A DNA stretch of 49,682 nucleotides from Bugula neritina (GCA_964035545.1 CAXIUT010000221.1:27141-76822), one strand, 5' to 3'; numbered from the stretch's first letter, positions 22,088 through 26,427 are shown. Notes: generated by a model not told the origin, from the letters alone. Translations and numbers: made by a program.

Positions 22088-23815
22088 ATGGGAGCTTGTA
22101 TGATTAGATAAGATCCAAGAGACTCAAAGGAAAGAACCAAAGAAACAGGTTCTAAAATTGACTCTGAAGATGATTTATAATATAACGACTAAAAATATTT
22201 TGATAGTAAACTATGTCAAGTCTAATAATAGAAAATGAATGATAGAATTCATAAAAATGTTGGAGCTCTTACTTGCTAAAATAGACATAAATAAATAGTG
22301 CTAGGAACTGGAATCTTGCTGTCTTCTAATGCTGTTTTGACATCTGCTCATAACCTTTATGATAAAGATAGCAAAACCTTTTATTCTAATATCAAATTCC
22401 ATCCAGGAGCAGTTGGATATCTAGGCAGTAGTTCTTGCTGTTAAGTTTAATAATACTTTTTTCCTTAATAATATAAAAAAAATCAAACCTTCAAATATGA
22501 CTATGCTCTGTTGAAACTAAAAAAGAAAACTTCTAATCAAGATTTTATTCCTCTTTATTCTGGTCCTCTTTAATCTGGTCCTACGAATATAATTAAAGAT
22601 TTATAGCTTGCTATTTTTGGATATCCTGGATAAAAATCTAAACTAAAAAGTCCTAAATAGAACATTTTATATGTATAACAGTGGGGACTAATCCGAAAAG
22701 AAAAAGTGATGTAAATAAGTTAATAAGGAAGAATCCTTCATAGAATATCAACTAGTGGTGGTCAAAGTGGAGCTCCTATAATAGGAATCGACGATAAAGG
22801 TAATCTATCGATCATAGGTATTCATAAGGGAGGTATAACTTCTAAAAAGAAAGGATAAGGAAATGTTGGGAGGCTGATTACTCCAGATTTGTTAAAAATC
22901 TTGAAGAAGTATGCTTTTAGTCATGGCATATAGATATTTAGTACTTTCGATCATTTTAAAATCAATAAATCTAACTAAAATAAACAAAGTTAATAGAAAT
23001 TATTTCAAACTTCTTCTTATCAATAAGATTCTATTATTAATCCCGAAGAAAAAAGACAATTTTAAAAATAATTCTAATAAAATAAAAACAATGCATCTGT
23101 TTTATTTGAACTAGGTTTCAAATTAGACAAATTGAACAAAACATAACAAGCAGTTAAATGCTACTAAAGAGCTATACAACTAAATCCATAAAATTCATAA
23201 AAACTAAATAGTCTAGGATAAAAATTAGACAGTATAAATAAAACTCAAAGCGCAATAAAATGTTACTAAAGATCTATTATTATTGATCCTAATTCATATT
23301 TAGCTTTCTATAATTTAGGCAAAGCTCTCCAAAAGGTAAATCAGCTCTAAAAAGCCATATAATGTTACGAAAAATCTATAAAAATAAATAAAAGTTTTGT
23401 CTAAGCCTATAATAATATAGGAAATGTCTACGATGATCTCCATAATACATAAAAAGCAATATAATATTTCAAGTAGGCTATAAAAATCAATCCAAAATAC
23501 TCAAATGCCTATACTAATCTTGGATATGTCCTCAACAAAACAAATAAAATAGAAGATGCCATCAAAAATTATCAATAGGCTTTGAATATCAATCCAGATA
23601 GTGCAAATACTTGGTATAATTTAGGAAATGCTCTTAGAGAGACTAATAAAGCTGAAGGTGCGATCAAATGTTATAAAAGGTCATTGTAGATAAATCCTCA
23701 AAATAAAATTGTATTGATGAATTTGGGTAGTACTCTTACCAGTGTAAATAGAGTCTAAGAAGGAAGATAATATATCGAGAAAGCAAAAATTTTATAAAAA
23801 AATAATAAAAAGTGA
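22088..23815 (+). CDS. V8/glutamyl-endopeptidase-like trypsin-fold protease fused to ~7 TPRs (copy 1), with N-terminal MGAC acylation motif
   Basis: Single intronless ORF. GTGILLSSNAVLTSAHN (His), YDYALLKL (Asp), IFGYPG, ISTSGGQSGAP (Ser), IIGIHKGG, then TPRs such as AFYNLGKAL..AIECYEKSI and AYTNLGYVL..AIKNYQEALNINP. Confidence 0.92.
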
Positions 23816-24119
23816 TTAAAATCTTATTTATTTTAGATTTTATTATTAATAATGATAAAATAACATTAAAATATCAATGGTTCAAGTTTATTTTTTAAAA
23901 AAAAGGGAAATGTTTAAAAAATATTGATAAAGTTGTTGTTATAAAATGTGAATAGATAATTTTATTACATATTTGTCATTAATTTATCAGAAAATTATTG
24001 TTAATTAATAAAAATAGCAACATTCATCTTCTCATATTTTTTATACAAAAAAAGTATTATTAATTATCGATAATAAGTACAACAAATCATAATAATTAAG
24101 ATAAATAATAAAAACCTTC

Positions 24120-26427
24120 ATGTAAAATTTTCATGATAAAAACCCTCAACCTCTTAGCTTTCTCGATAATTCATCATCCGAAGAAGTTCTTTCTGATGAC
24201 ATGAACGAAGTAGATTTTTAAAATGATATACTCTATCGAGTTGAACCCGATGAAATGGCTTGGCAACTTCATCGGCATATTGGAGTACTAACAGGAATCA
24301 ATAAATAGAATCAACTTGGAAAAGGTACTGCTATTTCAATATCATCTAATTTAGTATTAACATGCGCACATAATGTTTTTCATAAAAATACTCAATACTA
24401 CTATAGAGATCTTAAATTTTATCATGGACATTTTGGGGAATTGAAAAAGTATATTACTATTGAATCCATATTTCTGCCAGAAAAATATAAAACTAATGAT
24501 AGTTATAGACATGACTATGCATTGTTGAAATTGAGTTAGAAAGTTAAGGGTTAGTCATTTATTCCACTAAATTCAGGATAAATGAAAATCAATAATAAAT
24601 TGAATATTGCTATTTTTGGATATCCTTCAGATTACTATCATAAAGTTCTGCCCAAGAAATAAAATTTAGTTGTAGATCAATCTGGAATGATGTAAAAAGG
24701 AAAAATAGTTTATTCTTCAGTTTATAAAAATAAAGTTAATCCAGAAGAATAGAATTTTGTTGTAGATCAATATGGATTAATTTTAAAAGGAAGAATAGTT
24801 CAGATCAACTAAAAAGGTAAAATTGTTCATAAAATATCAACTAAAAAAGGTCAAAGTGGTGCTCCAATGATAGGAATTTCATAAAACAACTAACTAAAAA
24901 TCATAGGAATTCATAAAGGAGGTAAAATATGTAACATAGGTCGACTAATTACTCCTGAATTAATTACAATCCTCAAAAAACAAGCAAAATAAATGAACGC
25001 ATAGATGTTCCATATCTAGAAATATGAAAAGGTGACAAAGAGTCAAGATTATCTAAGAAATATCCAATAAAAACAATAAAATAGTTCAATAAAATACAAT
25101 TATCTGAAAAGTAGAGCCATTTTGAATAGTAACTATGAAATAAAAGATTTTATAGAATATATACCAGATTAATAAAAGAGTATATAGCTAGGAAAAGCTT
25201 TATTTTTCAATTAGAATGATCCATAGTTATACTTTGAACTAGGATTGTTCTTAATGAATAAACAGAACATAATAGGCGATTATATGTTTTCTTAAGGTAT
25301 TGTAAATCGATTCTAGTCATTTTATAGCTTATTCTCATTTGGTATATTCACTGGGAAAGATAACTAAAATATAGTAAATAATTCAATATCTATCAAAACA
25401 TCTTGGAAATAATAAAAATTTATCAACATTTTTAACTTTAGGATTAGCATTAGAATAAATATAAAAATTTTAGCACTCAATTAAATGTTACTAACATGTT
25501 ATTTCTCAAAAAAACAATCATTTTTAAGCTGTTCATCGTTTGGGAATAATTTATTAAAGAATAAATAAAATAGGAAAGGCAATTTAGTGTTATGAGAGAG
25601 CTATATTAATAAATTCTACATAAGAATATATTTACTAGGATTTAAGTAAAGCTCTTAACAAAATATATTATTTCTAATAATATGTTAAACACTTATCAGA
25701 AGTTATTGAAGGCAATACGTAATAATCAGATAAATATTGTAACTTAGCCATTAAACTTTACATGATAAATAATATATAAAAAAAAATACTAAATAGATGA
25801 TAAATGTTCAAATGCTTTCAATGATCTAGGTAAATTATTTATTCATCTTAATAAAACCAAAGAAGCTATCAAATGCTTTTAAATAGCTAATTAGTTGAAT
25901 CCAAAAAATGAAAAGATATTATATAATTTAGGAAACACCTTTAAAAAGAATAATCAGATCGAACAAGCATTAAAATGTTACTAAAAAGCAATAAAATTAG
26001 ATAGAAAGAATTCACATGCATTTTGCTATATCGGAGCAATCCTAAAAGATCTAAATAGACCTTAAGAATCAATAAGATACTATGAATAGGCTATAAAAAT
26101 CGATCCATAAAATACAAAAGCATTCAATAATTTAGGAAGCGCATATAGAAAGATAAATAAACCTGAACAAGCCATAAAACATTTCAAAAGAGCTATAGAT
26201 TTAGATCCGTCCAATGAGAAAGCTTATAATAATTTGGGTAATACATTTATTGTTGATCTTAATAAAATGTCAGAAGCTATAAAATGCTATGAGAAAGCTA
26301 TTTAGTTAGATCCATATAATTAGAAGCATATAAAAGTCTGATATAGATCTATAGGACAATAGGGTAAGATTAAAAAGCAAGGGAATACTAAAAAATAGTA
26401 GAAAATTTCAAAAAAAATTATAAATGA
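24120..26427 (+). CDS. V8-like protease-TPR fusion (copy 2, ~11-12 TPRs; a few indels in the TPR part)
   Basis: GTAISISSNLVLTCAHN, HDYALLKL, IFGYPS, ISTKKGQSGAP, IIGIHKGG, NIGRLITPEL, then TPRs such as AFNNLGSAY..AIKHFKRAIDLDP. Clear paralog of 22088-23815. Confidence 0.88.
24630..24800 (+). repeat. Degenerate 90-nt (30 aa) tandem duplication inside protease copy 2
   Basis: GTTGTAGATCAA ends at both 24680 and 24770; ENLVVDQSGMMEKGKIV versus ENFVVDQYGLILKGRIV. Confidence 0.85.

Follow-up and report, generated by a model that had tools for sequence, protein, structure and literature searches.

What kind of proteins are encoded by the two adjacent genes that occupy positions 22,088 to 26,427 of a 49,682-nucleotide (nt) stretch of the Bugula neritina assembly (GCA_964035545.1, CAXIUT010000221.1:27141-76822), and what might these proteins do in the cell? 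The stretch, referred to hereafter as the window, is AT-rich (GC content 22-37%) and has the character of ciliate nuclear DNA; it was read with genetic code table 30, in which TGA is the only stop and TAA and TAG encode Glu. A preliminary description of the locus had recognized two adjacent, diverged, and apparently intronless paralogs, each coding for a Glu-specific-type protease followed by an array of tetratricopeptide repeats (TPRs). The analyses reported here revealed that, among characterised enzymes, both proteases are closest to the S1B glutamyl endopeptidases of bacteria (BIGEP, Esp, and V8), and that the pair consists of tandem paralogues of ancient divergence on a ciliate nuclear chromosome. 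Each gene encodes an intracellular protein in which a short, acidic N-terminal segment precedes a serine protease of the chymotrypsin fold, followed by a TPR solenoid at the C-terminus. The main coding features of the pair are the following:

22088..23815, plus strand: gene 1, protease-TPR; one open reading frame (ORF) of 575 amino acids, from ATG 22088 to TGA 23813-23815
22088..22192, plus strand: N-terminal pro-segment of gene 1, residues 1-35; starts MGAC, acidic
22190-22192, plus strand: Glu35 of gene 1, in the near-invariant Glu column; nearby Glu31 at 22178-22180
22193..22945, plus strand: S1B-type protease domain of gene 1, with intact triad and an IGIHKGG motif with Gly216
23093..23806, plus strand: TPR array of gene 1; 7 in-register repeats of 34 amino acids, with local hidden Markov model (HMM) matches at residues 337-573
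24120..26427, plus strand: gene 2, paralogous protease-TPR; ~765 amino acids after bridging, four frame segments, TGA 26425-26427
24207..25010, plus strand: protease domain of gene 2, intact; begins at the junction Glu30 (24207-24209)
25227..26424, plus strand: TPR array of gene 2; ~12 repeats, the first 5-6 degenerate and the last 5-6 near consensus

Identity of the proteases and of the clade to which they belong

The catalytic residues of gene 1, which had been placed near 22349, 22499, and 22766, fall on exactly these codons (His88 22349-22351, Asp138 22499-22501, Ser227 22766-22768), and the triad of gene 2 is intact as well (His84 24369-24371, Asp132 24513-24515, Ser246 24855-24857). Both genes, then, show the His-Asp-Ser order of the chymotrypsin fold, and both carry the S1-pocket residues Thr190 and His213 together with the Gly216 typical of the V8/BIGEP/Esp group: Thr190 is encoded at 22751-22753 and 24840-24842, and His213 at 22823-22825 and 24912-24914, in gene 1 and gene 2, respectively, His213 and Gly216 lying in the motif I-G-I-H-K-G-G in either case. 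The statement that neither protein has a signal peptide also holds, since both N-termini (MGACMIREDPRD in gene 1 and MENFHDKNPQPL in gene 2) are hydrophilic and contain no signal-peptide-like stretch; secretion through such a peptide is a typical, not a defining, trait of bacterial S1B enzymes, and the bacterial relatives P0126 and P0128 possess clear signal peptides.

The assignment to the S1B/V8 type, originally read from sequence motifs, was corroborated by database matches, by a structural model, and by the conservation of Thr190 and His213. Pfam and PDB were searched with stop-free pieces of the window genes, and full-domain statistics come from local HMMER runs on table-30 translations. 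The 43-residue piece of gene 1 embedding Ser and His213 retrieved from PDB eight matches with E 0.013-0.045, all of them glutamyl endopeptidases (Esp and V8), the next one being a potyviral NIa protease at E 0.7. The 76-amino-acid His-Asp piece gave only a chance match in PDB, single stop-free pieces gave no match in NCBIfam, and in Pfam the protease pieces reached only sub-threshold Trypsin_2 and Peptidase_C3, with weak Peptidase_C3/C4 for the Ser piece. A first profile (A1) was built from the His-to-Asp pieces of both genes and searched against 1.84 billion representative proteins; a second one (A2) consists of 16 aligned longer database relatives and includes neither window gene. Compared with PDB, A2 matched 1P3C, the Bacillus intermedius glutamyl endopeptidase (BIGEP), with E 2.7e-28 and 102 bits, followed by Esp and V8 at 44-48 bits and by S1A enzymes at no more than 44 bits, so that the similarity to characterised S1B members exceeds that to other S1 subfamilies; the same profile scored 214.8 bits on gene 1 and 146.6 + 67.1 bits on gene 2. 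The AlphaFold model of the clade member P0135 (predicted local distance difference test, pLDDT, 88; predicted template modelling score, pTM, 0.87) displays a two-barrel fold whose best structure match is again 1P3C (template modelling score, TM, 0.88; root mean square deviation 2.7 Å), then Esp, YdgD, and V8. The nearest large ESM Atlas clusters by shape are all bacterial, mostly from Bacillota, and many relatives bear the automatic JGI label 'V8-like Glu-specific endopeptidase'. Cleavage after Glu at P1 is predicted for the window proteases from this homology and from their pocket residues.

The ciliate proteins share with BIGEP (1P3C), V8/SspA, and Esp the chymotrypsin fold, the His-Asp-Ser order, the best sequence and structure matches, the motifs S-T-x-x-G-x-S-G-x-P and I-G-I-H-x-G-G, the residues Thr190, His213, and Gly216, and a (V/I)-x-G-D-like N-terminal strand. 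However, the bacterial enzymes are secreted, stand-alone proteins with a signal peptide and a propeptide, mostly activated by another protease, whereas the ciliate proteins have no signal peptide, often an MG..C start, a junction Glu, C-terminal TPRs or leucine-rich repeats (LRRs), and reassigned stops in their genes; their identity with 1P3C is only ~19-25%. The Streptomyces enzyme Glu-SGP and viral 3C-like serine proteases, such as EAV nsp4 and the SeMV protease, act on or mature by post-Glu cleavage and possess His213 and Thr/Ser190, the viral ones being intracellular too (PMC5508998); their sequence similarity to the ciliate proteins is, however, much lower than that of BIGEP and V8, their S1 site is complete before processing, and they carry no repeat arrays.

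In tblastn, the protease domains of the two genes share 37.6% of their residues, a figure that rises to 47% when the aligned core is considered; no third copy was found in the window by tblastn. That the genes are adjacent, diverged, and intronless paralogs is borne out on all three counts, but gene 2 is not one ORF, as it requires three frame changes in the window. The different length of the TPR arrays, estimated at ~7 versus ~11-12 repeats, was retrieved when they were read in the 34-residue register (7 and ~12). In gene 1, a Glu-rich linker of ~50 amino acids connects the protease to the TPRs, and stop-free pieces of the array matched Pfam TPR_1, TPR_11, and TPR_17 above the cut-offs. A 15-nt tandem repeat (22549-22582; 2.3 copies, 94% matches) doubles S-G-P-L-E in a surface loop of the gene 1 protease.

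The A1 search yielded 400 clusters (50% identity) at E ≤1e-3, most of whose members are 60-200 residues long, the size of the fragments that a standard-code gene caller makes of ciliate genes. A scan of metagenome contigs revealed 62 loci; in ~40 of these, the protease match contains TAA/TAG in frame and the ORF, delimited by TGA, spans 300 to more than 1000 codons. In the unrooted tree obtained from 77 protease domains (mixture-model IQ-TREE; FastTree gave the same picture with 162 rows), three groups can be distinguished. The first embeds 39 rows, including genes 1 and 2 (Shimodaira-Hasegawa-like approximate likelihood ratio test, SH-aLRT, 100), and all its locus rows are TAA/TAG-sense, the code being unchecked for the database proteins in it; the second comprises 23 bacterial-like rows (SH-aLRT 97) and the third 15 standard-code rows, nearly all with RI-type LRRs (SH-aLRT 85). 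Genes 1 and 2 are mutual nearest rows, without strong support. Within the ciliate clade, His57 is invariant, Asp102 is found in 44 of 46 members, Thr/Ser190 in 44 of 46, His213 in 42 of 45, and Gly216 in 23 of 46.

The Bacillota affiliation of the nearest characterised and large-cluster relatives, and the restriction of known glutamyl endopeptidases to bacteria and viruses according to a 2017 review (PMC5508998), might suggest that the locus is a bacterial contaminant or that a trypsin-TPR gene was acquired from bacteria very recently. We regard this as extremely improbable. Gene 1 contains 48 in-frame TAA or TAG codons that are read as sense (40 TAA and 8 TAG among 61 Glu codons), the pair is flanked by ciliate genes on a ciliate contig of 49.7 kb, signal peptides are lacking, and the ciliate-only clade is well apart from the bacterial-like rows; codon usage, ciliate context, and the separate clade rule out contamination and recent transfer. 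The proposed comparison with bacterial S1B proteases has given a clean separation of the ciliate clade, which is old, and no recent transfer; the tree, being unrooted, does not show the direction of descent between bacteria and ciliates. An ancient bacterial origin of the clade is plausible, given that glutamyl endopeptidases are otherwise bacterial and viral.

The use of four codons for Glu, assumed from the beginning, and the reading of TAA and TAG as Glu instead of Gln are supported by the comparison of the window with contigs of the independent public runs X1 and X2, which revealed two GAA-to-TAA differences and one TAG-to-GAG difference (at 23045, 24207, and 25636). These strain differences are direct population-level evidence that TAA and TAG are synonymous with the Glu codons. 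Moreover, Asp and Glu are each ~2.2-fold enriched at TAA/TAG columns, and 79 of ~87 standard-code homologues have Asp at the position of the TAA that follows G-Y-P-G in gene 1.

The N-terminal segment and a possible activation mechanism

How might an enzyme of this type work inside a ciliate cell? An indication comes from the N-terminal segment, which we aligned over the 85 residues preceding the His motif in the 37 clade members covering the region. In 36 of them a Glu occupies the same column, in the context [D/N]-E-x-x-F-x-G-D-x-L; the F-x-G-D stretch aligns with the (V/I)-I-G-x-D-x-R start strand of the mature bacterial enzymes, and in the alignment with bacterial and LRR-type relatives the conserved Glu falls 0-2 residues ahead of the bacterial mature N-terminus. 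In gene 2 this residue is Glu30 (...M-N-E / V-D-F-E-N-D...), whose codon at 24207 is GAA or TAA depending on the strain, the residue being kept because both encode Glu. The extension before the junction Glu is ~30-35 amino acids long. A start with MG, located 67-96 residues from the His motif with one exception, is found in 12 of ~33 distinct genes, and 9 of these 12 have a Cys at positions 3-7 (MGAC in gene 1, then MGCGC, MGNTCC, MGCC, MGNDC, MGPC, MGGC, and others). Proteins that are N-myristoylated and palmitoylated classically show such an MG..C start.

The position of the junction Glu can be read in the light of what is known of the bacterial enzymes (PMC5508998). Every glutamyl endopeptidase conserves His213 and Thr/Ser190; in the Gly216-bearing V8, BIGEP, and Esp, the S1 site is completed by the mature Val1 through its alpha-amino group, and these enzymes are specific and active only once the propeptide has been removed. 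Streptomyces and viral enzymes process themselves at Glu(-1)-Val1.

On these grounds, we propose a mechanism for the pair that comprises a lipid-anchored precursor, cleavage at the junction Glu, and partner binding by the TPRs. The precursor would be inactive or weakly active and, in gene 1 and roughly one in three of its relatives, tethered to a membrane via acylation of the N-terminal MG..C motif. It would then be cut after the near-invariant Glu, either in cis or by a sister molecule, as would fit the predicted P1-Glu preference of the enzyme itself; self-cleavage is proposed precisely because the junction Glu matches this predicted specificity. The new N-terminus (usually Val, Ala, or Lys), together with Thr190, His213, and Gly216, would make the S1 pocket complete, in the manner of V8 and BIGEP, and the same cut would free the protease-TPR body from its lipid anchor. 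The TPR array, in turn, would bind proteins, either choosing partners and substrates or restraining the enzyme. Taken as a whole, this scheme appears to us slightly more probable than its negation; our leading guess concerning the process served is regulated limited proteolysis in signalling or defence. If true, the scheme would link the N-terminus-dependent specificity of V8-type enzymes to a eukaryotic membrane-release switch.

Several points weigh against it. The start of gene 1, MGACMI, has Ile at position 6, a poor N-myristoyltransferase context, and gene 2 has no MG start at all. In the AlphaFold model of P0135, the uncleaved junction is placed confidently within the fold (pLDDT ~89 from residue 10), which implies that the conserved Glu could be structural rather than a cleavage site; Lys214, present in 28 of 46 members, might balance charge without any processing. 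The activation of bacterial V8- and BIGEP-type enzymes is mostly the work of other proteases rather than of the enzymes themselves (PMC5508998). The role assigned to the TPRs is suggested by the architecture of the proteins, no RNA run with the locus was found, and gene 2, being frame-broken and carrying a 29-amino-acid duplication, may be non-functional in this strain.

A family with exchangeable C-terminal modules and the roles that it may serve

The idea of a lineage-expanded family, advanced in the preliminary description, agrees with the 400 clusters mentioned above and with the tandem copies found on further ciliate contigs; the alternative C-terminal modules that were expected in relatives were also observed, as LRRs, ankyrin repeats, Sel1 repeats, and coiled coils. 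Across the ciliate clade the protease core is kept and the C-terminal module varies:

Ciliate clade, TPR arrays: L006, L011 (tandem pair), L019 (at least 8 repeats), L022, L023, L024
Ciliate clade, short-period (~22-amino-acid) LRRs: L026:3-1595, L042:644-2245
Ciliate clade, other C-termini: coiled coil in L003 and L035, other sequence in L018, none in L004
Outside the ciliate clade, fused LRR_6: P0096, P0139, L030, L041, L043, L051
Outside the ciliate clade, other modules: VWA in L037, ubiquitin-like plus LRR in L047, ankyrin in P0198, RING/U-box in P0189, Sel1 in P0181
Outside the ciliate clade, P0064 on L001: dynamin-like N-terminus plus LRRs

The replacement of TPRs by LRRs in L026 and L042 implies that the C-terminal module has been exchanged within the TAA/TAG-sense clade itself. 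The many partly matching contigs of X1 and X2 also fit a multi-copy family. Ser195 is lost in 5 of 46 clade members (~11%), being replaced by Ala, Gly, Gln, and, twice, Asp; hence, judging from their sequences, about one in nine members is probably a catalytically dead pseudo-protease. The Ser-less members are L002:98-976 (G-Q-A-G-S-S), L014, L021, L031, and P0026, all of which keep His57.

A few loci deserve a separate mention. L011:1139-5347 harbors a tandem pair of MG..C-started protease-TPR genes, L058:10-5892 three copies with N-terminal extensions of ~500 amino acids, and L023 a protease-TPR gene beside a very divergent copy on the opposite strand. L001:1-4880 is a complete ciliate chromosome with C4A3/G4T3 telomere caps, 18.8% GC, and a standard-looking code; its single gene (1539 amino acids) comprises a weak dynamin-like N-terminus, a protease of the S1B type, LRRs of the RI type, and another protease domain, which is partial. 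The L003 scaffold (47% GC, with an N gap) has no called gene in 1-1900, a part unlike ciliate coding DNA, and is possibly chimeric, foreign, or derived from a host; only its protease ORF (P0045) was used.

What role might a conserved protease joined to exchangeable repeats serve? According to one explanation, the proteins would be innate-immune or conflict sensors, in which a foreign or danger ligand of the TPRs or LRRs would relieve autoinhibition and the protease would then cut host or invader proteins after Glu. The exchange of repeat modules on one protease within a single clade (TPRs, two kinds of LRR, coiled coil) and the recurrent tandem duplication (in the window, L011, and L058) are in agreement with this idea, and the ~11% of members without catalytic Ser could be decoys or regulators. 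In the 40 strain differences listed out of 190, changes that alter the amino acid prevail in the TPRs of gene 2 and silent ones in the protease of gene 1, although this sample is small and pre-filtered. Furthermore, Tetrahymena possesses fast-evolving, tandemly duplicated, and poorly expressed species-specific genes dominated by LRRs and TPRs (PMC6564038). The TPRs of the window are, however, near consensus and generic, and such repeats are very common in ciliates; no NTPase or other switch domain lies between protease and TPRs. On balance, a sensor role of this kind appears rather unlikely.

The same data can be read, with similar reserve, in terms of housekeeping or developmental processing: the TPRs would be a fixed adaptor (e.g., to chaperones, cortex, or cilia), and the diversity of the family would reflect sub-functionalisation. 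TPRs are indeed generic protein-protein adaptors, the catalytic and S1 residues are strongly conserved, the strain differences in the gene 1 protease are mostly synonymous, the paralogues are old (47% core identity), and the genes on either side, for an EF-hand-like protein and for a cation-efflux-like transporter, have no apparent relation to the pair. Nevertheless, among the 120 matches listed of 130 in the named databases there is no named model-ciliate orthologue, the large ESM Atlas clusters closest in shape come from bacteria without exception, the C-terminal modules are freely exchanged, and some members are catalytically dead. We consider this alternative doubtful, and the adaptor or housekeeping role and the immune-sensor role to be about equally likely.

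Known defence systems offer a further comparison. PADLOC models of Lamassu LmuA and RT-Protease class XI matched the relatives P0008, P0045, and P0135 (E 1e-12 to 1e-17; 2.6e-17 for LmuA) and the 76-amino-acid window piece (E 1.4e-4), and gave no match to the LRR-type relatives P0139 and P0096. In these systems a trypsin-like protease domain acts as an intracellular effector, and this domain-level similarity speaks in favor of a sensor; yet Lamassu and RT-Protease are bacterial, the similarity is that of the shared trypsin fold only, and the LmuB/SMC or reverse-transcriptase partner is absent among the window neighbours. The NACHT/NB-ARC switch of NLR/STAND receptors is likewise lacking, gene 1 having only the Glu-rich linker of ~50 residues before its TPRs, and Pfam scans of the relatives revealed no P-loop domain except a weak Dynamin_N in P0064. 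In TPR-CHAT Csx29 (Craspase), a TPR module is also joined to a protease that is controlled by TPR binding; that enzyme is, however, bacterial, has a caspase-like CHAT fold, and is RNA-guided via gRAMP, and no homology is implied.

It might also be imagined that the activation scheme proposed above is itself the output of a sensor, that is, that the ciliate proteins are NTPase-less sensor proteases whose TPRs or LRRs detect an invader or a danger signal and thereby trigger Glu self-cleavage, pocket completion, and membrane release. We hold this to be unlikely; if true, a single protein would constitute an immune or cell-fate switch, comparable to the defence systems of bacteria that use protease effectors.

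What appears to be new, in any case, is the occurrence of a known enzyme family in a eukaryotic intracellular setting, with a predicted lipid anchor, a junction Glu, and repeat modules, as a sizeable and diversified ciliate family joined to TPRs, LRRs, and other interaction modules. Eukaryotic cellular glutamyl endopeptidases go unmentioned in the 2017 review (PMC5508998), and our literature search retrieved no paper on ciliate or other eukaryotic cellular homologues of glutamyl endopeptidases, nor on ciliate protease-TPR/LRR fusions. The Tetrahymena LRR/TPR families are also ciliate repeat proteins that have expanded in tandem, and they evolve fast and are poorly expressed in axenic culture, but no protease or peptidase fusion is mentioned for them (Xiong et al. 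2019, PMC6564038), whereas here the repeats are the appendage of a conserved enzyme. If the proposed mechanism were true, it would offer a first handle on the purpose of the huge TPR/LRR gene expansions of ciliates.

The reading frame of gene 2 and the surroundings of the pair

Is gene 2 a functional gene at all? In the window it does not form a single ORF: frame 0 is open only to the stop at 25593-25595, and the end at 26427 is reached only after three frame changes, all on the plus strand:

25244..25258, plus strand: frame change 1 (0 to 1); contigs of X1, X2, and X3 have an additional T after 25244 and an additional G after 25255
25778..25787, plus strand: frame change 2 (1 to 2); a run of nine A at 25779-25787, with X1/X2 contigs one base shorter (-1 at 25778)
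26323..26325, plus strand: frame change 3 (2 to 1); X1/X2 contigs have an additional A after 26323

Taken together, these four 1-base indels give one continuous gene 2 ORF in contigs of the independent public runs X1 and X2, with X3 covering the first site; a further, in-frame 3-nt deletion occurs at 26250 in independent contigs. In our own translations, the breaks were filled with X for the local HMM runs. Introns were rejected as the cause of the frame changes, as the TPR register is unbroken and the contigs differ by single bases.

The protease core of gene 2 contains a diverged internal duplication of ~29 amino acids (~24660-24810, between G-Y-P and S-T-x-x-G-Q-S-G), in which the unit E-N-x-V-V-D-Q-x-G-x-x-x-K-G-x-I-V appears twice, splitting the HMM match in two; the duplication went undetected by Tandem Repeats Finder. 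This duplication, the degenerate proximal TPRs, the three frame changes required, with frame 0 ending at 25593, and a TPR part ~5% different from the X1/X2 contigs, with many amino-acid changes, might indicate that, in the strain sequenced, gene 2 is a pseudogene in decay, as would be part of the family, the frame changes being real and only gene 1 functional. Such a decay is, in our opinion, improbable, being at odds with three observations. Contigs of 2-3 other runs lack the indels and have the ORF restored; the correct frame stays open past each break, with good TPR matches; and the first two indels fall in a 1156-nt contig that otherwise has 2 differences from the window (99.8% identity over 1154 nt), which is how consensus indel errors would look. 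The breaks look most like consensus indel errors of the assembly, a strain-specific break being the less probable reading. From a practical viewpoint, single-base indel errors or strain-specific breaks are thereby flagged in the assembly, and the pattern implies that other genes of it may be affected too.

The divergence from run X1 is a mosaic: 0.2% at 24265-25418 (gene 2 protease domain), 2.3% over gene 1, and 5-6% both at 23741-24253 (spacer and gene 2 N-terminus) and at 25895-26500 (distal TPRs). Alleles or paralogues may have recombined or undergone gene conversion, or the contigs may stem from different alleles.

The features that surround and separate the two genes are the following:

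21193-21897, minus strand: gene for an EF-hand-like protein, flanking, which appears functionally unrelated
21898..22087: divergent spacer on the 5' side of gene 1, 190 nt, 17.9% GC, non-coding, with an in-frame ATG at 21995
23816..24119: spacer between gene 1 and gene 2, 304 nt, 14.8% GC
27126-28442, minus strand: ORF for a His-rich, cation-efflux-like membrane protein, flanking, which appears functionally unrelated

The spacers are AT-rich, with the lengths initially estimated (190 and 304 nt), but they are not unusually long as had been supposed: in a rough ORF map, the inter-ORF gaps of the window range from 15 to ~1000 nt, and many of them measure 200-800 nt. The ATG at 21995 was rejected as the start of gene 1, since runs X1 and X2 have a 4-nt insertion after 22050 that breaks the frame; on the basis of this indel polymorphism between 21995 and 22088, the start was placed at 22088. 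Downstream of the pair, the next minus-strand ORF (28439-29251) overlaps that at 27126-28442 by 4 nt, which might reflect either very tight packing or another gene split by an indel.

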